Notes: generated by a model not told the origin, from the letters alone. A stretch of 64,000 nucleotides of DNA from Macrostomum hystrix (GCA_950097015.1 CATNEN010000007.1:4898001-4962000), one strand, 5' to 3'. Numbered from the stretch's first letter, positions 25,952 to 59,367 are shown. Program-made: numbers and translations.

Positions 25952-27674
25952 TCAGTGGGTCATCCTTAGATCATCGAGATGTTGATGGGCCATCGAGGAT
26001 ATCTGTGAAAGTATATCTACCGCAGTAAAATCCCTCTTGCCAAGAAGACTGCTGTGCAATTCAACAAGTGGCATTTAGAAAGCAATTTTCTTTTCTAATA
26101 GATCTTTATAGGTTATGATTTGCCTCTGCCAATTTGCAGATTAGGTCTCGTGTGGCTTAGCTTTTCTCCTAATCTCTACCACCAATTAAATGCAGTCCAT
26201 GACAGTACATTCCCAAATTAACGAGAAATTAGCCTATAAGCTGCCGAGACTTATCGCACTTGGAGGATTACGAAAATGTCAGCGCCTCTCAGTCAAGGTT
26301 GGAACTTGGAAGCAGGGGGTTTGCAACATCGGCGTTGCCATCCGCCACTTCAAGCCGAGTATTTTAATGCAATCTTATAACATTTCCGAATCGGTGCCCT
26401 CATGCAACTGTGATTACAGAATACACTTTTCCGGACTTTAATTACCATGGTTTAAAATGTTGCGATCTGTCAGTCCCCAATATTCTATTGGCGTTCCGAA
26501 TGTCACATCACTCCCCAGTAAGCCGGGTCCAATGTCAATCATTCAAAAGCGCATATGTTTCGTCCCATATTTGCCCACTTTCAATTATCCTTGGCAACAA
26601 TAACCGCTGTACGACTCCATCTCAATAAACATGGAAATCAATGTCCCTTCTAAAAACTAGTTTTACTTGATTGCATATAGTGCTCTGCCTCAATCCATAG
26701 ATTAGTCTATGGCAAACACTGACAACATGCTTTAGTTGCTAGGCATAGCTAACAACAATCCACTCAAACTCGGATACGGATGCCGATGGAGGTGAGGGGA
26801 AGCTTGCAATGATCGACTCAATATTTGTTAATCGGTGAAAAAAACAATTAAAAGCAAACTTTGCGCGAACCAAAATCACCGACTGCTGGTGGGTCAAGCC
26901 GTGCAGACGAGACCTATTGGCAAACACCGATGGATGATCACGTGGCCGCCAACCAACAAGTTCTCTGCTATTATTGGTACAGTTATTGGGAAGCAGATCA
27001 CTGTCTTGATGTTAGAACTTGAGTTCAGAAAATGGAATAATAAAAAAACTAATGCAGCCCACCAACTGGGAAAATTGGAGCAAATTGACGACTCTCAACA
27101 GGAGCGTGAAGACAAAAAAGCAAACATGGCGCGTAGGAAGATGCTTTTGTCTATGGAGACCACGCGAGCAATCGGGGGGCGCCTGTCAACCAAGCCGACC
27201 CGACCCGCAAAGCACAAGCGGAGTTTGCATAGTCTATGGCCCAAGCGCCAACTGACACCGCGACAAAGATAATTGATAGTCTCGCCAGCAGGGGCGTTTG
27301 TTTTAACTGTTTAGATTGTGAGTAAAGCAGGCTATAACAATGAATCCTTCTCTGCTATTCTCAAGCTCATAAATTTATTTTAAAAGCTAAGATGACACTT
27401 CTCTGCTTTCACAGCTCGGGTCCGCCTTGTAGCCTGGGGGGGCTCAGCGCTAAACTATTAGTGGCCTAACATCTGGCAGAAAAATTTCTATAAATTTCAA
27501 GTGTATTGGATTTGAAATATACTTGACCTGAATGTTGTTGCTGGTTCAATAACATTCAAGGCACTACATGCCATGAGTAGTAGATTGTCATGCCAATTGT
27601 CCACATTTGAATTTTTAATCAACTATGAGCACCAGGAAACCAGAGCCAAGTAAGTGAGCAGGGTGTAGTGGATG

Positions 27675-44300: not shown

Positions 44301-45569
44301 CCCAAGCCTCAAGCCCTGGGAAGCTGTGCGCATGTGAAAGATCGGTTGAAATAGTTTTGGGGCGGGGCAGAAAGGAAAGCAGACATAAAAAGCGTATTTT
44401 AAGTGATTTTAACATAGACAGAAATTTTTCCTACCCCGTTCTTTTTCTAGCCAATCAGAATCTGACACAAAAATCTGCGATTTCAGGGAGGGGTCTATGA
44501 CTCTACGAGTAGAGTTGGATTAGGCGTCAGGAAAAAAGATCCTGTGCTTTTAGACTTCAGAAGAAGTAACAGACGTAGCAATTTATTATACTCTCGGGCA
44601 TCAGCTGCATGGCGGTCCGACTATCTTTGTTGTTTTTTTCGTTTTTTTATATTTTTTTCATCTTTTTTATACGAGTCTTTTTGTTTTCGAAACGCGAGGT
44701 AATTTGGTAAGTAAAATTTTATACTACTTAATTGTCTTCCAGGAATGGGTACAATAAATGAGTAATTATGAGTTATATTATGAGAAGAAATAAGTTAGAA
44801 ATTCGTAAGTTATTATGACATTAAAATAGTTTTTGTCCTTTTATACTTTGTCATGTTGTTTAAATTACGTTTCCTATTGAACGCATTTTTGAAGACAACA
44901 CATGTACGCCTGCCTACATGTACCATTTTAATAGCTAGTCAGTCGCCCCAGGTTGCAGGTATTTGAATAAAACTAATAATTTTATGGTAGTTCACTTATG
45001 AAATCATTTATTTTTTATCTGGCTATTTGTTTTCACTGTAGCGTCATTCGAAGACATGAAGCAAGGGCAGCTACTCGTATTCACAATATACGAGCTATCT
45101 TCCCGAATGCTGTCTAATAACTGAAATCTAATAATGTAAAATCTAAAAACTGACACCATACCCTACTCCACTCTATAAGATTATGCACTGTCAGGCTTGT
45201 CTCGTCGAAATTAATACAAAAATTATGCAAAAATTATGAATGAAACAACAATTATGTAACGACGTAATAGTACATGCAAGAGTACAAGTGCGAGTACATT
45301 GACATATAACCAAGTGTGCGTAAACGTCTCAAGCTCGTGTATAGTTTATGGCCCAAAGGCCATCAAAGAAATAGATTGAAGTGTGCAGTAAATTCCGCAA
45401 CTGTGCGGTAAATGACATGACTATGCGGTAAATACCGCATGAACTGTAGGAATTTATTAAACAAGGTTAATTCCAAAGCACAATAAACAAACAAACAAAG
45501 TTGAACTCACAAAAATGTAACACATTAAGATGGAGACGAAGTCTAGAATGTTAATCGGCAATAGTCAGT

Positions 45570-46470
45570 TCAAAGGTCACATCTTACCAAATGTGCAGTT
45601 GGAAACCTGGCCATGAAAATTGAAAACCACCTGTATCTTCTCATTGCTTGATGATCCTTCCTGCGTCTTCTCCGCGTGGAACAAGACTTCTTAGGTGCTG
45701 GCTCCCCTGCATTCAGTGAGACGTGCAGAGACTCGCTCATGGCTTGCATTTCCCCAACGTAGCGAGACCCAAAGCGCAGGTATCGCTCGACTGTCTTGGT
45801 CGCTTTGTGGCCTGTTACTTTACAAATGTCAGCGACGTTGTATCCAGCGGTGGAAAGCTGCTTGATGACCGTTGGTCTGATGCAGTGACCAGTGTAGCGC
45901 TTGCTCAATTTGGCGTCCTCACTGATGCGAGCCATCATGCCCGTCAAGGCATTGGCGCCGAGAGGCTGCTTTCCAAAAAACCAGCCGGTGTTCTGGAAAC
46001 CGGTCAACCGGGGCTTCAGGAAAAATGCAGTCTCATTCGCACTGGAAGTGCTGGAAGTGCTGGGAATGCACTCTTCCCTCTTCTGGAGGTACATCCGCAG
46101 ACATTGCACTGGACACTGGCTGTCTGCACTCGTCATTACGGCTTCCTTCACATTGCACGCCGATTGCTTGTCTAGGTCTTTCCCCACATTCTTTACTTTC
46201 TTCTCCCGAAAGCGTACCACGTCTCTACCTGTGAATAAATCGTAAATCTGTGACTCTACCTGTGCGTAAATCTGTGAATGCTTGCCCGAAAGCCCCGAAT
46301 CGTATCCGGTGCATAGGTCTTCGTGCCGAGCTCGGGGTTCGCTCGCAGACTTACGTACTAGAGGCGCAGATAGCCGTCTAAGTAGCGCAATGGCATGCTT
46401 TCAATGTCATCAGGAATGTTTTTTTCTCGAAGAAATCTTTTGAGCTGCTCCACGTAACTCTTAGTCATTG
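45570..46470 (-). pseudogene. Crypton-like tyrosine recombinase (DUF3504-type), internally deleted, HxxR subfamily
   Basis: N-terminal part ...EQLKRFLREKNIPDDIESMPLRYLDGYLRL*YVSLR...YAPDTIRGFRASIHR. C-terminal part CPVQCLRMYL...KQPLGAN...RYTGHCIR...VTGHK...VERY. Duplicated TCTACCTGTG motif at the junction near 46225-46270. Confidence 0.8.
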
Positions 46471-46479
46471 CAACGGTGG

Positions 46480-47620
46480 ATGGTGACTTGGACATCGGAG
46501 CCATTCGCAAGATGGGATTGCGTGTGTGCAGTGTGCATTTTAGTGACAATTATTATAGCTGTCCCTCTTTGTGGCATGAATATACGTACGACACGTTTAC
46601 ACTGGAATGCCGTTCCAGAAAGGGAGCTGACTCTACCCCGTCTAATCGCGCTTGACCTGACACATTTGGTTGTTCGCAGTGACGAAGAGACTGACAACAT
46701 CTATCCACCTGAACTGCAGCCATTCAATAGCACTGATGGTGACAACTTGGAGCCGCCACAGGCCGGGCAATGCCAACAGCCCACAGCTCAGCCAATCAAG
46801 CATATAATGAGCAGCGAAGCAATAACATCATCGCCCAGCTGCGCTGCAAAGCCCGCCACGAAAAAGCCGCCATTCGACAGATGCAAGCTCGACAGATACA
46901 AAAAGCAAGGGCAATCCAGACAGGTGGCAGTTCAATAGCAGGTCGTCTGATGCAGAAGGTCAGGCGTGATGCTTGCAGCCGCGGTATGCGCTGGACTAAG
47001 GAGGACGTTGCGTGCTCAATTCAGCTGCATCACAAAAGCTCGTCCGCAATGAGTGGAAGATGCCGATACCATTGGAGTCGATGATTAGACGGTGAATCGA
47101 CAGTATTTCGTATTGCCAGGAATATGTAAATTGACAATGCTATCCTTGCAGACCAAGTAGTATGGATTATCGACCAATCAGCTCTGGATCGCTATACCCT
47201 TTGTTTCGATGGAATGAGCCTTAAACCCAGCCTGCGCTACCAGCAGCATCGTGACATGGTGGTCGGCTTCGATCCACGGACCGCTAGTGAAAGCCAGGAG
47301 CAGTTGCCCAGGCCTATAAACGAGGCAATCGTCGCTGTGCTCCGAGGCATCTTTCAGGACTGGATTTTCCGAGTCAAATGCTTTCGGACAGCCCAGCATA
47401 TTGAGCAGCCGGTCCGCCACAAACTCTATGTAGCGCCGTTGTCAGAATGCTCTGATCGATACGCATCGCGTCGCACACGATCTCCAAGATGCGCTGCCGA
47501 CTGGGCGGCCGCTCTGTGGAAAGGCATCGGAGTATTCCCAACATATCCTTTTTTCGTAGCTGCCACACAGCCGCCGGCAAAGGAAAAGAGCCGACGGCTG
47601 TCGTGAGTCACGAGCCATAT
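46480..47620 (+). pseudogene. Degenerate P-element/THAP9-like transposase
   Basis: THAP remnants RVCSVHF and RLHWNAVP (frameshifted). LCFDGMSLKPSLRY...DMVVGFD...AIVAVLRGIFQDW resembles the P-transposase catalytic N-terminal region. Confidence 0.7.
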
Positions 47621-49999
47621 ATGCTTTTCAGGCGGACAGACTCGCCAACAGGCTGTAACAGCACGCGACTAAAATGTTAAGATGGCATTAGGCTACTTGT
47701 AGTAGCAGTTTGGTAGCAGCACGCATTTTCAAAAACTAAAATTAGCCACACTTAAATGCAGCAAAGAACATCACACCCACGCTCGAACGCCTCCCGCGAC
47801 GGTACGGTAGAAACCAATGTTCGAGGCGAAAAATGTACCAACTCGAAATTCGGCAGCCAAAGGCAGGTCCTGAGAATCGCATAGTCTCTGTCGCGGAGGA
47901 ATAAGCGGCATCTCCGTCCCTCCTCATCGGCAGGGTTTCGAAAATAAGTAACAAACCTTATTTGGATTCCTGGTCAGAGGTTAGGAGACCATTTACCGAG
48001 CATCCAGGAAGGCATCTGGATGCGTCGGACACGCAAGTAAAGTTTTGATTTCATGACGTGTACCACGAAGAAGGCCCCGTTGTCGGCACTGGTCAAGTGA
48101 CTGAGTTGCTCTGGCCGAACAACAGTGGATGGTTCAAGAACCCTATCATTAAATTCGAGGCATATCTCAAACAGCGAAATTTGGCTGAAAAGTAAATGAG
48201 TGGTTTGTGCAAAACAATTTTTTTACTTGTGGAGGCATATATTTATCTCTTAAGCCACACTGTACTCAAACGCTCATCGCTAAACCGCTAAACCGCTCAT
48301 CGCTATCACAGTGCAGCCATCTCTGCGTTACGCTTTCTGTTGCTCCGAATGTACCTTTGTGTAGCCGTGTCCGATTTGTGTCCCGTTACAGCATCGATAT
48401 CTCGCATGGACACTCCAGATGCACTCAACTCGATTGCCAGGGTGACCCTTAGATAGTGGCCAGTATATACGACTTGCTCAAATTGGCCGCTTAAGAAAGC
48501 GGCTACTACACCTTTTCACTTTCTATTTTGATCGAATTCCAGTTCTAAAAGAACTAGCGGAAATTCAATTCAGAAACTTTGAGCTATGGTCAGTGCTAAC
48601 AGAAAATCAATAAGAAACAAGCACCCTTTCAAAAGCAACAAAGCCCGTTCAATTCAAACTCGGCTTTTTGTTTCTGGCAAAATCTCTCTTACTGGAAGGC
48701 GAAAGGATGCTTTGAAGAACTTCAATAGAAACAGAGCTGTTTCAAAAGAAACTTAACCATGACATAGGCACATGTCAACGAAAAACTGTACAACAGAAAC
48801 TGAAGGAACGAGTGAGCGAATAAATTAATTAATGAATAAATGAACAACCAATAGAATGAAATAAGACATTCTGTCAGCTACATTTTGTCAAGTTGTACGC
48901 ACATAACCAGCTACCCATCAATAGGTTGTCGAGCCAGGCACCGTAGCACGTAAGTGAACACGTAGTTAAACCAAGCGGTGCACTTCTCAGCAGTAATACA
49001 ATCGGACGTTTGATTAATTTTGGTCAGTAGCATGTCTCGCCGGTGGGCAGTCAGCGTCCGACCTTGGAGCTATTCGACAGTCGACGCGATAAACAGCTGC
49101 TGCAGTTGGGCTAACTCACGCTTCAAAGCAGCCTTCCAGCATGCAATCGAGTTCTCTACAGGCGTGAGGAAGGGGCTGTATGGCGGCAGGCGTCTGATTT
49201 CGACACTGCCTGGAATCTCGTAGTCTTCGGCATCATTATGGGATGAAACATTTGGTAGCTTTTCCAGCCTTCCAGATCGCAAAATCGTGTACGCAGTTGT
49301 CCGCTTTACAAATAAGTGCCGGGCCAATTCAACAAAATCTTCTCCTCGCTCAAAAGCTCCAATAATCCTAGCTCTATCAGCATTGCTGATCCTGTCGTTC
49401 GTTCGTTGTTTTGACCGTTTGGCTCGCCATTTTAAACGTCATTCGCACCGTCTTCGCCATCCTCCTCCATTAGATCGTCTGTGTCTTCTTCGTCGATGTC
49501 AGCAAACATATTTCAGAATTTTTTTGATTCTTTAGAAAGTGAGATTTGTCTTTTTTTTATTTCTTCTAAGCCAAACCAGTCACATATGCAAGAAAGTTTT
49601 GACCATAGAGCATTGCATAAGTTTTTATTGAAACTACCGTGACTCATTTAAAGACAGTTTGTTTTTATTGATTTTCTGCCAACATTCTAGCTGGTGATAA
49701 TTTGCCAGAGACAAAAAGCAGAGTTTGAATTGAACGGGCTCTGTTGCTTTTGAAAGGGTGCTTGTTTTTAGGTATCCCCCACTTGCCCCGGGCAGTTGTC
49801 TATGTTTTTAAGCTTTTAATTTGCACTTTTAACTAGTGCAATAAGTTATTTATTTCACTTTGCATCGATGCAAATAAATTAACTATAACACAGAACTGTA
49901 ACACAATAATAGACAAACAGAATTAAACGAGCGAACGAATCAATAATCAGTAATGTAGTTATAGTAGTTAGTAGTTAATGAACTTATTAGTTCTTCTAG

Positions 50000-51262
50000 C
50001 TATTTGAACTCAATTTTCACAGTGTTGGTTTCGCCATCCGCCATGATTTATCATTCGTTTGCTAGTCGGTGGAGCCACAACAATTTCGGTATCGGTATCA
50101 GACACGGTAATCGTCCTTTGCGACACGATACTGGTAGATGCACAGACAGTAGTCGTATCTCCACTTAGTACAGCAGACTGCCGCTTCTGCCGTTCGGTTG
50201 ACGGCGAGATGTACCCCTCCAGTGCCTTGGCCGTCGAGTGCCCAGTGATTCTGGCGATGTCCCCACGTTCAACACCAGCATCGTGGATCTGGGTAGCGCA
50301 GGATTTTCTAAGGCTCTGGTTAGTAAAGTGAACGGCACTGTTCGGACGGACTTTAGCAACGGTATCCTTGACTAGCGTAGCGAGAACATTCCTACCAATG
50401 GGTTGGACGCTGTACCAGGCCTTACCATTGGAATCCGACCAGTTGTTATTGGCAGATAGAAACAGTGCGGTAGAGCAGTTCTCAGGACACAGTGAGACAT
50501 AATTTTAATAGAGGCAGACAACGCACCTCTCAGGATCTGCGGAATGGTACGCCTTGACCAGTTTGGGTTGCTTTAGATGGCCCTTCAAACCGCCCTGGTT
50601 TGCTTTGGTGCGCTTGCGCTCTTCGTAGACCAGACACTCTTCATCACCGGCAACACTGTCAAGAGTAATCTCGCGCCTGTATTCCAAGTCGCGCAACTCG
50701 GTGCCACCACGTAGTACGAAATGCTTTGCAACTAGCCAAACAAGAGTACTTACTAGCTGCCTTGGATTGGCTGATCCTAGAATGCCAGCACTCCAGAGCT
50801 CTTCTTCGATAGTTCTTGATACAGGTTCGGACTTGTTGAGGCCGACTCCCTTGCCTTCTGCTGTGGACAATTTCATCGATGCGTCTAGAGCCTTTCTACT
50901 TTCGGAAAAGGCGGGATCGGTCCACAGACACCAATCCTTAGAATAGGTGTTGCGCACTTCATACTGAAGCATTGAAAAAAAATCCTTCAGCGTTCCAGCA
51001 GAGTATCTTTCGTTAGCTCTCGTCCTAACCTCCAGAATAAATAACTTCAACAGGTAGTTCAAATCGGTCTTCTCAAACTCGTCCATTCAGCACCATTAGT
51101 GATGACCCACCGTTCCTGGCCCATTCGTTCTTTTTATGCTGGTGCCAGAGCTTGAATGTCGAAATCATCCACTATTTTTACGAGTGTTTTGTGGAGTCGT
51201 ACCATCCACGATTGCAGCGGCCTGCTCCTCAGTCAGATTAACAAACCGATTTAGAATGACAT
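50000..51262 (-). pseudogene. Crypton-like YR gene, unit A, full length but disrupted
   Basis: LKLFILEVR, LRGGTELRDL, KRTKANQGG, FTNQSLRK, ITGHSTAKALEGY. In-frame TAA near 50505 plus frameshifts at both ends. Confidence 0.85.
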
Positions 51263-51547
51263 GGCAATTCTTCGCTTAGTCTGAACTATTGACGAGTTCT
51301 CTGTGTTGCTCTCTCTTATACTTCGATTGGTACAGTCAACTCCTTCAGACTCTTTAACCATAGACTAGAAATTTTCTGACCCCGTCTGTTTGCCCGTTTC
51401 AAGTAAGGGATACATATCATATTCCCCACTCATTCCCATATTTAATATGGGAAATATTATACACTCAGCAACATTTAAAACGCAACACTCTAACTAGAAG
51501 AAAAATCAACTCACTCAGAAGAGTCAAAGCGCATAGTCTATGGTTCA

Positions 51548-51916
51548 GGGGGTCGGTGGCAGAGCGGTTAACGCGTTTGCCACTCGCACCACAGTCCCTA
51601 AGTACGATTCCACGGCGAGGCCACATTTATTTGGGGCGCAGCCGCGGAGAGAAGGCTTGGGGGCTTGTCGTGCAATTTACGCCCTTGAGGGCCAACCTCC
51701 AAGGCACAGTTCGAGTGTACACTGCCTGACGATGAGAAAGTCAGGGCAGATGTACACACCTGTGTGAGCGTATGCCTGCGTACGGTATCTGTGTGCGTGT
51801 GTGCTCAGGAGTCAGCGAAATGGGCAGAATTGCCTCCTCGCTGGCTGCGGGTCTAGTGTCACCAAATGATGTGCCATTGCCCGCAGCCCTCCTGCAATTA
51901 TTATTATTATTATTAT
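51548..51916 (+). mobile_element. tRNA-derived SINE with (ATT)n tail
   Basis: A-box-like TGGCAGAGCGG, B-box-like GTACGATTCC, (ATT)n tail, 14-bp TSD TAGTCTATGGTTCA (51534-51547, 51917-51930). Second copy at 31.7 kb. Confidence 0.88.
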
Positions 51917-51939
51917 TAGTCTATGGTTCAAATCGAGCT

Positions 51940-52977
51940 TCAGAAACGCGTGTAGCCTCCTCTCGCAAGTAACAGGGCGTTGACTCGACGTGGCATTCCC
52001 AGAACAAGGCGTCGAAAAAAGTCCTGGGGAATTTCCTGCCACGCGTTAGCAACAGCGTTTCGCAGTTCAGCGACTGTCTGCGGCGGATTCTGCCGTTGAA
52101 CACTCCGCTTGATAAAGTCCCAGACATGTTCAATTGGGTTCATATCAGGGGATCTTGAAGGCCACCGAAGAGTACGCAGGTGCAGCTGGTCCTTGAGTTC
52201 GCTGACAGCTGCTGCCCGGTGCGCCGGTGCATTATCGTCCTGCAGTATGCAGTTTGCGACGCCACCAAAGTGGTTGTTAACAAAAGGGAGCAGATGCGTC
52301 TGCAGCAAACGAGCGTACTCATCGCCGTTCACGTTTGCGTCTAAGAAAACCAGCTGGGTCCTGCCTCGCATTGAAATCCCTGCCCACACGTGTACGGAGG
52401 GTCCCTGCCCATCGCAGCTTTGCACGTGCTGCTGCAGAAGCTCTTGCCGTGGCTCTCGCCAGACGCGAATTCGGCCATCACTGCGAAAAAGACGAAACCG
52501 ACTCTCGTCTGTAAAGATAACGCGCTGCCACTGTCCTTGCCGCCAGTGCGCCCGCTGCATGGCCCACAGTTCCCTGTTAGCGACATGTGCAGGACTCAGG
52601 CGCGGCCTCCTCCGCATTTTTCTTGACCGCAATCCTGCAGCGTGAATCCTGCGGCGAATCGTCTGCGCGCTGAGAACGTTGCCTCTGCGGCTTCTCTCTG
52701 CCCACATCAATCGCAGGAGTGTGGCAGGCAGTGTGGGGTTTCCACGCACTATTCTCAGCAGGCGTCGATCTGCCCTCGCTGTTGTACTGCGAAGTTGGTG
52801 AAGCACCGTACCTTTTCTCGCGTGAGCCACGCTTCCAGTGGCTCTGCTCTTCTGTAGCAGACGTAAAACTGTTGAAGGCGACCTCCCGAAGTGGTTCGCA
52901 ACTGTTCGAAGAGTACAACCTGCTTCCAACATTCCGACTGCTCGCCATCTTTCCGCGTCTGTCATCTGTTGAACCAT
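51940..52977 (-). CDS. Tc1 transposase, 345 aa, intact
   Basis: Paired HTH N-terminus; FTDESRF, LQDDNAPAH, SPDMNPIE with 34 residues between D and E. Confidence 0.95.
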   Translation of the reverse strand: MVQQMTDAERWRAVGMLEAGCTLRTVANHFGRSPSTVLRLLQKSRATGSVAHARKGTVLHQLRSTTARADRRLLRIVRGNPTLPATLLRLMWAERSRRGNVLSAQTIRRRIHAAGLRSRKMRRRPRLSPAHVANRELWAMQRAHWRQGQWQRVIFTDESRFRLFRSDGRIRVWREPRQELLQQHVQSCDGQGPSVHVWAGISMRGRTQLVFLDANVNGDEYARLLQTHLLPFVNNHFGGVANCILQDDNAPAHRAAAVSELKDQLHLRTLRWPSRSPDMNPIEHVWDFIKRSVQRQNPPQTVAELRNAVANAWQEIPQDFFRRLVLGMPRRVNALLLARGGYTRF

Positions 52978-53317
52978 TCTCTCAGCTGGATCACTCTATC
53001 TGAAAACAGTCCATAGTCATCGCCCTGTTACTTGCGAGAGGAAGCTACACGCGTTTCTGAAGCTCGATTTGAACCATAGACTATGCGCTTTGACTCTTCT
53101 GAGTGAGTTGATTTTTCTTCTAGTTAGAGTGTTGCGTTTTAAATGTTGCTGAGTGTACATGTATCCCCCTTTTGCCCCGGGCGAGTGTCTATGTGACGCA
53201 TGTTTTCATGTATCCCCCACTTGCCCGCCAACATTGTCTATGTCGTAACGCGTTTCATTTATTTGCCCTAGGGCAATAAATCATTTATTTCCCGCGCCCC
53301 CGCGCGAAACAGAACTT

Positions 53318-53881
53318 TTACCACAGACATAAGTCACACCCGTCTGGGGAAATAAACAAAGAAAGTGCAAAACGAGAACGCTCGGAACCAAACACACCCT
53401 CCGTCCAGCAGTCATCTTCGATGGGCTTTGACACCGGGTCAGACTTCTTGAGCCCGACGCCCTTGCCCTCAGCAGTTGATAGCTTCATAGCAGCGTCCAA
53501 CGCTCTTCTGCACTCGGCAAACTCGACATTCGTCCAGAGGCACCAGTCCTTGCGATGCACGTTGCGCATTTGGTATTGTAGCATTGAGAAGAAGTCCTTC
53601 AGGGTACCAGCCGAGTACCGTTCGTTCCGTTTTGTCCGGACCTCCAGGATAAACAACTTCAGGAGAAAGTTCAGGTCCGTCTTGTCAAACTCATCCATGT
53701 CCTTGATAACCATGATGGATGGTCCACCATTCGTCGCCCATTCTTGCTTCTTAAACGCGTGCCATTCATTGAAAGTAGACAGCATCCACTCGCATTTCTT
53801 TACGGTGTTCGGAGGGACCGTGCCGCCAATCATGGCCTCCGCCTCGGCCTCAGTCAAGCTTTCAAATCGAGGGCTAGACAT
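53318..53881 (-). pseudogene. Crypton-like YR gene, unit B, N-terminal half
   Basis: MSSPRFESLTEAE...LLKLFILEVR...MKLSTAEGKGVGLKKSDPV; homology to unit A stops after EGVFGSE. Confidence 0.85.
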
Positions 53882-54040
53882 ATACAAGCGTCTGCTATTC
53901 TGTCCTGTTCTGTCTTTTTCGCATAAAGGCTGTCTTTTTTAGCGTCTACCCTCCTCTCGGATTTTGATTTTCACCATAGACTACAGACAGAGCGTAGCAA
54001 GAAACAGAAGATTTAAAGTGCAATGAAAGTCGGCAGCCAA

Positions 54041-54210
54041 GTGGGGGATACATACCATCTCTCCCACTTATTTCGGCTGTCTAGGGTGCAAAGGCACTCG
54101 GCGCGAATTTCATTGACCTCGGCTTCGCCTCGGTCAATAAATTTGCGCCTCGAGCCTTTACACCCTGGCAGCCGAAATAAGTGGGAAAGATTATACATTT
54201 ATTTCCCTAG
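54041..54210. repeat. Long imperfect palindrome with central GGC-TTC-GCC hairpin
   Basis: CCCACTTATTTCGGCTG...ATTGACC pairs with GGTCAAT...CAGCCGAAATAAGTGGG around CTCGGCTTCGCCTCG. Confidence 0.85.
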
Positions 54211-54220
54211 GTGAATAAAT

Positions 54221-54354
54221 CATTGACATATAACCAAGTGTGCGTAAACGTCTCAAGCTCGTGTATAGTTTATGGCCCAAAGGCCATCAAAGAAATAGAT
54301 TGAAGTGTGCAGTAAATTCCGCAACTGTGCGGTAAATGACATGACTATGCGGTA
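54221..54354 (+). repeat. 134-bp direct repeat of 45297-45430
   Basis: Identical by eye from CATTGACATA to ATGCGGTA. Confidence 0.9.
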
Positions 54355-54355
54355 G

Positions 54356-55330
54356 TATACCTTTTCCACTCCAAGTCTGTCACAAGTAACTTCAAATCTG
54401 CCGTAGATAGCAGAAAGGCATACATTCAGCTCGCAAGCCGAGCGCCAACTTAAGAGTCTATGGTTAAAGCTCAGATCAATTCTGTCATAAGTAACTTCAA
54501 ATCTGTCCACTGAACAGATAGGGAATTGGAACCAAAGCAGTAAAGACTAGAAAACTTCTTTATAGACAGACCCAGATTTTAACAGTGAAACTTATTCGTC
54601 TATGGCAATCTTACATATAAATTCTGTCACAAGTAAGTTCAAATCTGTCAGAGATATATATGTTGACAGCAATGCGAGTTCAGAACAATTTTTTCTTGCC
54701 ATACCTACCATGCCCTATGCAAGAATATGCTTAATAGACAGGCAGCGCCTGGTTAACAGCTACAACACTGGACGGGACTGGAGGAGACTGGCCATTGACC
54801 TCGGAATCAAAAAGACCACCGCAAACTTGATCCTAAAGCGCTATCTAGAGGAAAACCGGACAGAATACAGAACAAGAGGAGGGGCTAGACACATGAAAGT
54901 AAGTGAACAGATGCTTCAAGCACTTCACCGGTATGTTGCTGAGAAGCCGACCATCACATTGAGTGAAATGCGAGAGAGGCTGACTGTTGAATTTCACGAC
55001 GCACCCGCTGTTTCTACTCAATGCCTGAGCAAGAAGCTAGACGGTACTCTGATAACCTTAAAGGACGTCAGGCATGTGCACGCGGGCTGGAATGCGCCAG
55101 GCACCATGGATGCGCGAGCGATGTACTAATTTAAGAGAACTGTTCAAAATAAACCTTTGTTTCGTTATCTGTTCAGTGGACAGATTTGAAGTTACTTATG
55201 GCAGAATTGATCTGAGCTTTAACCATAGACTCTTAAGTTGGTGCTCGGCTTGCGAGCTGAATGTATGCCTTTCTGCTATCTACGGCAGATTTGAAGTTAC
55301 TTTTGACAGACTTGGAGTGGAAAAGGTATA
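54356..55330 (+). mobile_element. IS630/Tc1-like non-autonomous element with 165-bp TIRs and transposase N-terminus only
   Basis: Inverted repeats 54356-54520 and 55166-55330 including TA ends. ORF from ATG 54710 with HTH and RGG motifs (YVAEKPTITLSEMRERL); no DDE domain. Confidence 0.85.
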
Positions 55331-55612
55331 GTAGACCTGCAGCTACTATGCAGTAAATCCCAGACGGGTATTGTCTATGGGCCGAAGGAGCTGGTCTTGC
55401 GCACACACACTTGGTCATAAATCAATGCACTTATGCTAGGCTTCCTAGTGCGTAAATCTACCATTTATTTCCCGCTGCCCCGCGGGCTGATAAATTCGAG
55501 ACAACAACCATAGACTAACAAAAACTAGCAAAAAAGTGTAGCACACAAAAGCTTAATTACAACTGTAGGACACAAAATGTGTGATATAAAGTTCGTTTCG
55601 GACTTATAATGA

Positions 55613-56482
55613 CTAACAGAATGTGATTTTCACAACGTTTTTTTCACCGTCTGCCTCGATGAGCATGCGCTTACTAGCAGGTGGTTCGATAGAAACCTCG
55701 GTATTGACGTCGGACACGGTAACACGAGACTGTTGTATGATACTTGCAGCAGAAGCCTCGGTGGCGTCTCCACTCAAAATAGCACTTTGGATCTTCTGTC
55801 GCGTTGTTGATGGCGCTATGTATTTCTCCAGAGCCTTGGTAGTAGCGTGACCAGTGATCCGAGCAATGTCTCCGCGTTCGACACCAGCCTCATGGAGTTG
55901 AGTAGCACATGCTTTTCGCAGGCTCTGATTCGAGAAACGAGCAGTGCTGTTTGGCCGAACTTCAGACACTGCGGCCTTCACAATTGTCGAGATAGTGTTC
56001 TTCCCAATAGGCTGAACACTATACCAGGCTTTTCCGTTCGATTCCGTCCAGTGCTTATTGGCGGCAAGAAACAAAGCTTTTGAACAATTCTCGGGGCGCA
56101 ACGAAACGTACTTGATGTATAGGCACACAACGCATTGCTCCGGATCTGCAGCATGGAAAGCTTTGACTACTTTCGGTTGTTTCTGAATTCCTTTCAGGCC
56201 ACCTTGATTCGTCTTGGTCCGCCGACACTCCTCGTAAACAAGGCACTCTTCAATCCGACTGCCATCCAAATTGATCTCGCACTGGAATTCCAAATCACGT
56301 AGCTCACTACCACCCCGCAGACCGAAGTGCTTGCCAATTAGCCTAATTACGGTGCGAACTAGTTGCTCAGGATTGTGGGAGCCTAGCACACCAGCATTCC
56401 AGCAATCATTTTCGATAGATTTCGTCACAGGCTCTGACTTTTTTAGCCCGACTCCTTTTCCTTCCGCAGTTGATAGCTTCAT
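55613..56482 (-). pseudogene. Crypton-like YR gene, unit C, complete catalytic C-terminal two-thirds
   Basis: FGLRGGSELRDL, RRTKTNQGG, FSNQSLRK, ITGHATTKALEKY. The 5' end stops abruptly at the CTCGGCTTCGCCTCGG hairpin. Confidence 0.88.
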
Positions 56483-56803
56483 AGCTCGGCTTCGCCTCGG
56501 TCAATAAACGAGACACCTCTTGCTTTTGCCCGCTAGACAACAAAATAAATGGGGAATATTATACATGTATCCCCCAGTTGCACTGGTGCAGTAGTCTATG
56601 TTCTAATGGTTTATTTCGTTTATCTGCACCGGTGCAGATAAATGATTTATTTGCACCGGCACAGAGTGCAAATAAACAAGAACTTTATATTTTAAAATGA
56701 AATCGATTCAACATGAAATTTTAACCATTTAACAGTTGCACTTGTGCAATAGTCTATGTTCCAGTGATATACGCAGACGCAGATATGACGCAGATAACAG
56801 TGA

Positions 56804-57133
56804 TTAGTCCTTGTTTACGAATGTGATTGTCACCGTATTAGTGTCACCATAAGCCTCAATCCGCATTAGTTTGTGCGGTATTCCTTGAACCACAGTTGTT
56901 TCACAGAAGTCCGTCCCGGTTGTAGCAGTACTGCCATCGGGTGTAGTCACAGTTGACATGGTCCTTGTACTGATCTCACGAGTTTGACTGCCGACTTGAC
57001 CGCATAGAATTGCGCTTATGGTTTTCTGCTTCGTGATAGATGGCGAGATATAGCGCTCAAGGGCTTTAGAACTGGAATGGCCTTTGGCGATGTCACTACG
57101 CTCAATTCCAGCCTCATGCAACTCCGTGGCGCT
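56804..57133 (-). pseudogene. Crypton-like YR gene, unit D, C-terminal fragment
   Basis: ATELHEAGIERSDIAK-GHSSSKALERYISPS...NTVTITF, homologous to the ends of units A and C. Confidence 0.82.
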
Positions 57134-57412
57134 GGTCAGTGCTAACAGAAAATAACTGTTAATATTTACTTTAACTCGGCTTCGCCTCGGTCAATAAACG
57201 ACGCACTCAAGCATTTATTGCCCTAGCCCTGGTATAAATGGGGAATATTATTAACTGGGGGATGTATCCCTCAGTTGAATAGCATAAAGTACAAAGCTAA
57301 AAGCAAAAATGGCCATAGACACTAGCATTAAGGTACTGTACCGCTAAATGAAAGACGCGCTCGTAAAAAGAAGAGAGGCAGCGCGAGTGCTTGGCTTAGC
57401 TAGCTATTTAAA

Positions 57413-57550
57413 ATGGCTACCGAAAGCTTTGTCAATCTGACTGACGAAGAAGTCAGTTCACTCATCGAAGGAACGGTTCCAACAAACACGCTAAAGAAAT
57501 GTCGCTGGATGTTTTCTACTTTCCAAGAGTGGCATGTGGCGAAGAAAGTA
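57413..57550 (+). pseudogene. Crypton-like YR N-terminal fragment (unit E; probably the inverted 5' end of unit D)
   Basis: Manual translation MATESFVNLTDEEVSSLIEGTVPTNTLKKCRWMFSTFQEWHVAKK aligns with the N-terminus of unit B. Confidence 0.8.
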
Positions 57551-57702
57551 CTCTGGTTTTCGGATAACAAACTTTTTTGAAATATAATTTGACATAAAAA
57601 CGGATAACAAACTGTTCTGAAATATGACATACACTTTAAGCAGAGTTTGTGCTTAAATACTTGTAAAGCTAGCAGCTTAAAACATGTCATTGCTGAGGTA
57701 CA

Positions 57703-58761
57703 TCACAGCTGGTGGTTCTCGTGCCGACGACGGAAAATTATCTCGGCGATTTCCAACCGACGCTGCCTGCCAGCAGCTTGCTGTTGAGCGTCGCCTGCGT
57801 CAATCGTGACGGGTGGTAGTTCGGTCACCTCTTCCATCTCCCCTTCAATTACTTCGTCGTCGACTGCTGTGTCATTTAACTCTTTCGCCACATTGTGCAG
57901 AACGCAGCATGCGATGATGTAGGTTGGAACCCGCTCCAACTTCACGCGTATCATATAATTGAGTATTGGGAAGCGTCGCTTCAACTGACCATATGCATTT
58001 TCAATGACAACTCGAGCTTTCGAGCGCTTGCGATTGAACAAAATCTCCTCCGGCTGATTGTGCTCCTTGAAAGGCTTCATCAGGAAGGGCGAAATGCCAT
58101 ATCCCTCGTCTCCAAGCAGCACAGTGCCCAATTGGTTTGACAGATCAGTGTAGATTTCAGAATTATTGAAAATTCTGTTGTAATGTACAGAGCCTGGCCA
58201 CGATGCATCCACGCTTGTAAGCTTGAAATTTCCGTCACATGTGGCTTGAACATTGATTGAGGCGAACCCCTTGCGATTCACGTACTCGTTTCCCACAGCA
58301 CCAGCGGGCTCCTCTATTCGAACATGAGTGCAATCGATTGCACCAATCGCCGATGGGTATTGGAACTTGATGTACCAGTCCTGCTTGGCTTCCTGAAACA
58401 TCTGGTCGCACTGAGTTGGCCATTTGATCCAATCTTGTGACCGTGAACAGATGCCTTGTACAACCTGCCAGGCAGTCTTCGACACAGTTGTTTGATGAAT
58501 GCCAAACTCCCTCGCAATTCCTGTTTGAAATCCGGGATTTGAAATGTACCTTAGAGCGACCTCCATTCGCACTGAAGGTGACAAGGCACCGCCCCGGAAT
58601 TCCTGACTGTCGTCAAGGAAGTGCGACGCCAGGAACTGCACACTGTCGCGGGTGAACCTGAAATGTCGCTGATACTCGCAGTCTCGGAGTACATCAGATG
58701 AAAGCCTCTCTAAGTACATCTTGCGTCTTGCAGGAGCGATCTCGGGCATGAATTCAGCCAT
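57703..58761 (-). CDS. PIF/Harbinger (HARBI1-like) transposase, 352 aa, probably inactive
   Basis: GAIDCTH, YVNRKG, WPGSVHY (conserved D replaced by Y), LLGDEGY, VIENAYGQLKRRF. One terminus ...TTCATACGGCC at 59027 and a 16-bp inverted repeat at 58923-58960. Confidence 0.9.
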   Translation of the reverse strand: MAEFMPEIAPARRKMYLERLSSDVLRDCEYQRHFRFTRDSVQFLASHFLDDSQEFRGGALSPSVRMEVALRYISNPGFQTGIAREFGIHQTTVSKTAWQVVQGICSRSQDWIKWPTQCDQMFQEAKQDWYIKFQYPSAIGAIDCTHVRIEEPAGAVGNEYVNRKGFASINVQATCDGNFKLTSVDASWPGSVHYNRIFNNSEIYTDLSNQLGTVLLGDEGYGISPFLMKPFKEHNQPEEILFNRKRSKARVVIENAYGQLKRRFPILNYMIRVKLERVPTYIIACCVLHNVAKELNDTAVDDEVIEGEMEEVTELPPVTIDAGDAQQQAAGRQRRLEIAEIIFRRRHENHQL

Positions 58762-59367
58762 CGTGCATCAGTTGCATACGGTTGAGGAAGCTACGTAGCT
58801 GCCTCAACACTTTCCGAGTAAATGCTCAACTGTTTCGTCTATGGCCTGGATTTTATTCTTACTGGCTGGAGCAATTGCTTAGCTACACAGAATTTACTCC
58901 GAGATTTGATATTCGACTCAGGAGCAAATGCTCATGAGCAAATTCTCATGAGCATTTGCTTCGTTTTTTCATGCTGACCTGAGTATTTACTCCAGTTCGA
59001 GAATTTCCTCACTTAATTCATACGGCCTCATAGTTCAAAGTGTCTGAATTGAATTTCCGCTAGTTCTTTTAGAACTGGAATTTGATCAAAATTGAACGTG
59101 AAAAGGTGTACTACACGACTACTGCCTGCTTAGCAAAGTAACATGACTCAGTCAATCCGCGCACTCGAGGACGTAGGAAAACCACAGAGCTCGTTTCCGT
59201 TTAGGATAGAATGTAAAATTTCCATTAAGGAAAGAATGTTGTATTATTATTTCTAATTACAAATCACAAAAAAAATTAATATAATAATAATAATAATATT
59301 CTTATATTATTAGTATATAATAATTTTATTAATATAATATTAGTATTATTATTATTATTATATTATT

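Follow-up and report, generated by a model that had tools for sequence, protein, structure and literature searches.

A cluster of tyrosine recombinase (YR) genes of Crypton-type DNA transposons was analyzed in a 64,000-nucleotide (nt) stretch of the Macrostomum hystrix genome (GCA_950097015.1, CATNEN010000007.1:4898001-4962000), hereafter the window, from whose first letter all positions are counted. The window is animal DNA rich in transposable elements (TEs). Searches with tblastn and Pfam over the 64 kb found seven YR fragments (A, B, C, D, E, Z, and Y) and no further one; all lie within 12 kb (45.3–57.6 kb), and six are on one strand (tblastn). Five of the seven (A–E, 49.8–57.6 kb) belong to one DUF3504-type family. 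In the profile search that a preliminary description of this DNA had called for, the YR open reading frames (ORFs) matched Pfam DUF3504 (E = 4e-22), Phage_integrase (E = 2e-7), and a QRICH1-type N-terminal domain. A protein word search returned four relatives (best identity, 45%), and the sole named protein relative is a DUF3504 protein of Macrostomum lignano (42% identity). The locus is probably a pile of broken Crypton copies of several distinct lineages, lying at or just inside one another's ends. The sense of the units is the minus strand, and their parts are as follows (UTR, untranslated region).

45297..46549, minus: unit Z, a distant-lineage Crypton with the 3' end ...GTCAATG (Pfam, tblastn); its YR (45573-46549, minus) has ~30% amino acid identity to C
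48309..48503, minus: fragment Y, the C-terminal catalytic part of another Z-like YR (Phage_integrase, E = 3.5e-8; tblastn)
49771..51459, minus: unit A, the only near full-length Crypton (~1.69 kb), with YR A at 51248..50049, minus (tblastn, frame analysis, motifs)
53158..53206, minus: the last 49 nt of unit C (AAAACATGCGTCACATAGAC...GGGGGATACATG), cut off from C by B (de-nested alignment; joint 53206 to 54196)
53207..54195, minus: unit B (989 nt), nested in the 3'UTR of C, with YR B at 53887..53321, minus (contig skip, fold, tblastn)
54196..54220, minus: the second 3'UTR hairpin of C (ATTTATTCACCTAGGGAAATAAATG), whose right arm is the target of B (de-nested alignment)
54221..55461, minus: element X (~258 nt), of a different Crypton lineage, plus a Tc1-like insert (joint 54220 to 55462; identity to Z)
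55462..56484, minus: body of unit C, with the YR ORF and the 3'UTR up to the first hairpin; YR C at 56485..55616, minus (ORF, Pfam, tblastn; near-identical contigs elsewhere)
56485..56563, minus: 5' terminal piece of C, with site G' (TATAATATTCCCCATTT) and the left palindrome arm to the apex 21-mer, then directly the ORF
56564..57133, minus: unit D, the C-terminal ~110 residues of a third YR lineage and a 243-nt 3'UTR; YR D at 57145..56807, minus (tblastn, motifs, bridging contigs)
57134..57174, minus: 41-nt linker from the apex to the ORF of D, containing the 20-mer ATTTTCTGTTAGCACTGACC
57175..57556, plus: fragment E, inverted, with YR E at 57413..57556, plus (tblastn, motifs)

The units share one layout. 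At the 5' end, TATAATATTCCCCATTT (site G') precedes a long palindrome, whose apex is conserved, and site G, the mirror of G'. Next come ATGTATCCCCCACTTGC (site T'), GTCTATGG ~90 nt ahead of the start codon, and one YR gene. Downstream of the gene stand two adjacent TTTAT...ATAAA hairpins, CATAGAC, and the 3'-terminal GCAAGTGGGGGATACATG (site T). The 3' end motif common to the units is GCAAnTGGGGGATACATG, to which an inward GTCTATG word and the TTTAT/ATAAA hairpins are added. T' and T form a 17-nt inverted pair, and T and G are variants of one 13-nt word, matching at 10 of 13 positions. Motif counts were compared with the chance expectation across the window. ATGTATCCCCCACTTGC, already pointed out in the preliminary description as the start of units, occurs seven times against 0.11 expected (including 49770, 53159, 53208, and 56565), and the other site motifs gave 5 against 0.37 and 3 against 0.00. 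The apex 21-mer CTCGGCTTCGCCTCGGTCAAT is identical in three units (56485-56505, 57175-57195, and 54118-54138), with arms that are 74–75% alike. In A, the parts are 5' TATAATATTTCCC, a shortened palindrome, T' (51399-51415), GTCTATGG (51358-51365), the decayed YR ORF, and T (49770-49786). Both ends of B are complete, the 5' one with a 137-nt palindrome; the unit has an internal deletion and ATG at both flanks. In C, an estimated ~650 nt are absent between the apex 21-mer and the ORF. The 3'UTR of D holds a perfect 24-bp palindrome (56619-56642), as had been reported, and ends in site T at 56565-56581. E runs from the apex 21-mer through a palindrome arm, G (57236-57251), 10 extra nt (TAACTGGGGG), T' (57262-57278), and the 5'UTR to the YR residues, and it is truncated by a Harbinger-type element.

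Folds were scored against shuffled sequences. The hairpins recognized in the preliminary description fold better than shuffles in three of the four units (z = -2.6, -3.1, and -5.9), but the first hairpin of C is not significant alone (z = -0.3). The 137-nt 5' palindrome of B reaches -53 kcal/mol as a single strand (z = -13).

GTCTATGG is also abundant (16 copies against 1.3 expected). Because it occurs in the terminal inverted repeats (TIRs) of Tc1 and upstream of the Harbinger gene as well, it is not specific to the units, and from its placement it looks like a general promoter-proximal word of TEs in this genome rather than a seam. Its copies are at 26705, 27149, 27232, 51358, 51536, 51919, 53074, 53974, 54456, 54598, 55223, 55373, 55508, 57313, 58837, and 63669; in Crypton, Tc1, and Harbinger genes alike, the word precedes the start codon by 76–140 nt, and it occurs in both orientations. 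GTCTATG was considered as a recombination seam and rejected: it lies 18–60 nt inward of the ends, and Tc1 and Harbinger elements have it too.

Two true head-to-tail junctions are present, D|C at 56564/56563 and C|A at 53158/51459; the latter was rebuilt by removing an intact Tc1 element and one TA copy. Both read ...GGGGGATACATG|TATAATATT(C/T)CCCAT..., and the joined ends have the form AAGTGGGGGATAC-ATGTATA-ATATTCCCCATTT, in which two 13-nt inverted arms, matching at 10 of 13 positions, flank a 7-nt spacer. The mirror image of this joined-end site lies just inside the 5' palindrome. As the ends of B are fixed by an empty site (see below), the T|G' sequence is a joint between two elements, not the interior of one. 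All four resolvable Crypton–Crypton junctions are nucleotide-precise, falling after an ...(A/C)ATG that ends T or a T-like arm; nested insertions, as opposed to added cassettes, make up half of the events that can be resolved. One contig, from another organism (organism B), carries a D-type 3' end that meets unrelated sequence exactly at 56565.

The nested insertions were delimited using contigs, not raw reads, of four public runs aligned to 51350-57349, for which 15 of 626 joints were listed. A contig of another organism joins 53206 to 54196 and thus skips exactly B (989 nt), with ATG fitting on both sides. In contigs of two organisms, 54220 is joined to 55462; the 1241 nt left out are exactly X and its Tc1-like insert, and AATG fits on both sides. 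When B and X are taken out of C, the layout hairpin 1, hairpin 2, AAAA..CATAGAC..T of A, B, and D is given back. The empty-site joints and the restored layout together identify B and X as insertions into a C-type unit. X consists of two pieces (55461 to 55334 and 54352 to 54221) and is nested between the two hairpins of C. B and X each directly follow AAATAAATG, the right arm of a 3'UTR hairpin. GGGAAATAAATG, which resembles the end word GGGGGATACATG, has three exact copies in the 64 kb, where 0.31 are expected at up to one mismatch, and two of the three carry an insert immediately behind them.

These results redraw the array in part. The preliminary description had placed DUF3504-type copies in tandem, all on the minus strand once an inversion is undone; A–D are indeed on this strand, but B is nested in the 3'UTR of C. 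The unit thought to begin at 53158 is the 49-nt tail of C itself. D and an extra 3' piece (56564-56732) are one unit, since contigs of two organisms bridge 56732/56733, which also rules out the extra piece as a solo unit (D'). The reported lack of target-site duplications holds for staggered-cut duplications, in place of which the nested inserts have a short direct repeat of 3–4 nt (ATG for B, AATG for X) at both boundaries. A model in which the ends lie at the palindrome center, with ~100-nt TIRs and all junctions nested, was rejected, because the empty-site joint of B puts the 5' end at TATAAT, outside the palindrome.

The coding state of the copies is varied. A is near full-length and has at least three in-frame stops and 2–3 frameshifts (frame analysis). 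B keeps the first 170 residues and lacks the C-terminal half, D keeps the last ~110 residues and lacks the N-terminal part, and E keeps YR residues 3–50. C has an open 289-residue ORF (55613-56482) that begins at residue ~133 of the full protein and contains the catalytic Arg (LRGG), Arg (SLR), His (GH), and Tyr (LEKY). The YR gene is the sole ORF of unit A (1.69 kb), and an ORF and Pfam scan found no reverse transcriptase, RNase H, or methyltransferase ORF inside any unit. The copies are clearly divergent, as had been noted from three quoted peptides, all of which were found in the ORFs: amino acid identity is 69% for A and C, 49% for D and C, and 52% for E and B, and the DNA identity of A and C is 69%. 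The proportions of synonymous (pS) and nonsynonymous (pN) differences are 0.80 and 0.18 for A and C and 0.81 and 0.19 for A and B. With synonymous sites saturated and pN at ~0.18, the lineages separated under purifying selection, long before their co-location. The units thus diverged as working genes and are independent insertions, not in-place duplicates. Another organism's contigs, some from a possible RNA run, hold a C-type ORF with 98–99% identity; the C-type sequence there runs beyond 56485 into different sequence, which fits a longer C-type copy elsewhere.

Based on these junctions, empty sites, and divergence values, we propose that Crypton circles integrate by YR recombination at the ends of relatives or at end-like hairpin arms, a reading to which we assign a probability of roughly 75%. 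The termini, the 3–4-nt overlaps, the end-like targets, the layout of the core, and the independent origin of the units are seen directly in the DNA. Circle excision with a T|G' core and strand exchange by the YR at the spacer ATG are the steps that the sequence suggests. In such a scheme, the excised circle would carry the T|G' core, and its junction would read GGGGGATACATGTATAATATTCCCC. The recombinase of the element would exchange strands at the spacer ATG with a target offering a T-like arm and ATG; the best genomic targets would be other Cryptons, with GGGRRATAMATG-type targets preferred. Integration at a resident 3' end (GGGGGATACATG|) would give the head-to-tail products D|C and C|A, and integration at the right arms of the 3'UTR hairpins (GGGAAATAAATG|) would give the nested products, B and X in C. 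Repeated arrivals from several lineages would build a co-oriented array, later decayed by stops, frameshifts, deletions, and inversion, into which Tc1 and Harbinger elements would then have inserted. The idea of repeated site-specific integration of circular units at a resident end, put forward in the preliminary description, is upheld in its core by the two precise 13-7-13 junctions, the empty sites, and the separate arrivals. The family itself is likely to be a compact (about 1.7–1.9 kb) CryptonA-type DNA transposon that targets its own kind.

Several points weigh against this proposal. All Crypton copies at the locus are defective, and the first His of the HxxR motif is replaced by Gln (NQSLRK) in both C (55880-55940) and A (50300-50350); Gln is also present at this position in homologues P0001 and P0002 from other assemblies, and His in the more distant P0004 and Z. 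No circular form or circle junction was seen in the contigs, and no empty site for D|C or C|A was found, among the 15 of 626 joints. The empty-site contigs may be paralogous C-type copies, which would fix boundaries rather than the history at this locus, and either heteromultimer circles or ectopic recombination between ends that the copies share could also have produced the head-to-tail junctions. At the E|D junction, 10 additional nt (57252-57261; CCCCCAGTTA on the minus strand) separate T from G', and the 3' end of A is GATACC instead of GATACATG. An exact 20-nt direct repeat, ATTTTCTGTTAGCACTGACC (48588-48607 and 57134-57153), brackets the D–C–A block (~8.5 kb) and falls outside the model.

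The palindromic 10-nt extra at E|D repeats the neighboring T arm as its inverted complement, resembling the long P-nucleotide tract that an opened hairpin end leaves. One copy of ATTTTCTGTTAGCACTGACC adjoins the ORF of D, and the other lies between the 3' flank of A and a Tc1-like TIR arm beside fragment Y. C and D both break right after GCCGAG at the palindrome apex and are fused to internal sequence (GCCGAG|CTA.. and GCCGAG|TTA..). By analogy with the center-break route known for palindromes, these apex deletions probably arose by hairpin-tip breakage and end joining. The two deletions, independent of each other, start at the apex 21-mer, which may be a functional or fragile site. For the inversion of E, recombination by the YR between T' and T or an apex-centered rearrangement would both fit.

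The last 132–134 nt of X are 100% identical to the 3' end of Z (45297-45430 versus 54221-54354). In one run, contig depth at this block is several-fold over that of its neighbors, so that it probably represents the terminus of a non-autonomous family with many copies and recent activity. The array is interrupted and bordered by other elements:

51460..53157, minus: Tc1/mariner element with perfect 88-nt TIRs and an intact 345-residue transposase (repeats 100%; Pfam DDE_3/HTH_Tnp_Tc3_2)
54353-55333: Tc1-like insert in X, with 173-nt TIRs
48613..49769, minus: decayed Tc1-like element with 83-nt TIRs, adjoining the 3' end of A (repeats; weak DDE_3 match)
57557..59028, minus: Harbinger/PIF-type element with an intact 352-residue DDE_Tnp_4 transposase (57703-58761, E = 5e-35; Pfam)
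47214-47606, plus: ORF between Z and Y with a weak match to a TNP-like RNase H N-terminal domain (P-element/THAP9-type transposase fragment)

The Tc1/mariner copy at 51460-53157 sits in the spacer of the C|A junction with a TA duplication and is probably very young; part of its interior (51550-51949) is extremely high-copy in the aligned runs. For the Harbinger element, searches gave neither recognizable TIRs nor a second Myb-like ORF. The array and the Harbinger gene both lie between the arms of an inverted repeat of 85 nt (93%; 48504-48588 and 59029-59113, 10.4 kb apart). At their outer ends (TAsTAyACCTTTTC), these arms are similar to the ends of the Tc1-like element at 54353-55333, and the repeat could represent a large composite or two solo ends; when it was checked as the Harbinger TIRs or as a 10.6-kb composite, its flanks had no clear duplication. 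Of retroelement proteins, just one lies nearby, an rve integrase at 59.6–60.8 kb, outside the array.

Other explanations can be set against integration at the ends of relatives. The first goes further than our proposal and seems unlikely to us: self-targeting would have evolved as a safe haven, the TTTAT...ATAAA hairpins would be landing pads mimicking the end site, and the folded strand of the terminal palindrome would reproduce the 13-7-13 site as a hairpin, with the recombinase acting on folded single-stranded or cruciform DNA. Action of a recombinase on folded DNA has its likeness in integron attC sites and CTX phage, and the terminal palindrome would be used likewise. The palindromes fold strongly as single strands, although the fold alone says nothing of use in recombination. 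If true, the family would be a first among eukaryotic transposons in combining a defined lox-like site with the use of folded DNA as substrate and with programmed growth of arrays.

A passive transposon graveyard, in which Crypton copies became adjacent by chance and without site specificity in a heterochromatic or low-selection region, we regard as quite unlikely. Every Crypton copy is dead, and the same 15 kb holds two Tc1-like elements, the intact Tc1, the Harbinger element, the P-element-like fragment, and an adjoining long-terminal-repeat (LTR) retrotransposon integrase, much as a graveyard would. However, two exact joins of a 5' end to a 3' end are not expected by chance, which also fails to explain the nucleotide precision of four of four junctions and the presence of two different elements behind one and the same 9-mer.

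That the host produced the junctions, through gene conversion or through ectopic or homologous recombination between the conserved ends of Cryptons, is improbable. The overlaps of the nested inserts, just 3–4 nt, are too short for homologous recombination, the hairpin-arm targets merely resemble ends, and the inserted elements are complete end to end. These features stand against the conservation of the ends across lineages, the full identity of the 134-nt Z/X block, and the repair-type scars present at the locus (the apex deletions and the 20-nt repeat), all of which host repair would accommodate.

That one ancestral unit was duplicated in tandem in place and its copies then diverged, as the shared orientation, common end motifs, and neighboring positions might suggest, is very improbable, since neutral decay predicts a pN close to pS and many more stops than the observed pS of ~0.8 and pN of ~0.18 allow, B and X have empty sites, and C-type copies are 98–99% identical in another organism versus 69% for the DNA of A and C; the earlier judgment that this is not a simple tandem duplication therefore stands. 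Barely credible is a true integron-like platform, one resident recombinase with an attachment site collecting cassettes, as the label in the preliminary description implied: palindromic sites able to fold do lie between the units, and the recombinase is of the tyrosine type, but neither end of the array has a platform integrase gene, a unique attI-like site, or a common promoter, every unit brings a YR and an upstream motif of its own, no cargo ORFs have been captured, and half of the events are nested.

Integration by site-specific recombination at the ends of relatives can be compared with several known systems. A loxP/FRT-type core consists of two inverted 13-nt arms and a 6–8-nt spacer. 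Prophages and integrative elements accrete at attL/attR when the resident keeps a usable half-site and overlap and a second circle integrates beside it. These systems are bacterial, phage, or plasmid, and we know of none for animal transposons. The likeness to integrons lies in the tyrosine recombinase, the arrays of units, and the imperfect palindromes between them; the difference is that there is no intI/attI/Pc platform and there are no promoterless cargo cassettes, each unit being itself a transposon. Closer analogies than the integron are the self-insertion of DIRS-1 and the accretion in tandem of integrative elements at att sites.

Among the classes of eukaryotic DNA transposons, Cryptons are understood least. 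The elements resemble CryptonA (Kojima and Jurka 2011, PMC3212892; Glomhopper, PMC13465315) in having a single DUF3504-type YR gene, no reverse transcriptase, a compact size, no staggered-cut duplication, and non-autonomous and deleted derivatives. For animal Cryptons, these two papers report no defined ends or recombination site (PMC3212892, PMC13465315), and in the Glomhopper study of 2026 the boundaries could not be fixed (PMC13465315). In contrast, the present units have nucleotide-defined ends, a 17-nt T'/T pair, a 5' terminal palindrome, a 13-7-13 joined site, and mutual insertion. The terminal inverted repeat (T'/T) and the palindrome of up to 137 nt depart from the published description of animal Cryptons; the published absence of terminal repeats does not exclude an element that has them, so Crypton membership is left standing. 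In a distant Crypton on a metagenome contig (L001, 34–35% identity), no comparable end architecture was found, and no description of tandem or head-to-tail Crypton arrays was found in the literature searched. YR sites have arms of 11–13 bp and a spacer of 6–8 bp according to Kojima and Jurka (PMC3212892), and the 13-nt arms and 7-nt spacer found here correspond to this layout. In CryptonF-1_cRei of Chlamydomonas, insertion by recombination of the terminal CACCG with a target CAYCG, with associated inversions, was observed (PMC9977147). This element and the Goodwin model share with our scheme a short terminal sequence exchanged with a near-identical target, here ATG or AATG after a T-like arm. 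CryptonF-1_cRei belongs to another Crypton group, with no self-targeting or arrays reported, and its activity was observed, whereas that of the present family is inferred.

Animal Cryptons thereby gain a concrete lox-like docking site, with ends fixed to the nucleotide by empty sites, and their transposition chemistry becomes testable with one small protein and one 33-nt site. The locus also offers a compact candidate for an animal site-specific recombinase system. End-like targets in other copies account for the co-oriented arrays. The nearest precedent for such self-targeting is DIRS-1 of Dictyostelium, which, according to PMC5633606 (citing Cappello et al. 1984), inserts preferentially into its own copies and forms clusters with no apparent sequence preference. 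DIRS-1 is also a self-inserting eukaryotic YR element thought to integrate from a circle; it is a retrotransposon with reverse transcriptase/RNase H and inverted LTRs, whereas the elements of this locus are DNA transposons with sequence-defined insertion points. They provide a DNA-transposon counterpart to the long-known self-insertion of DIRS-1.

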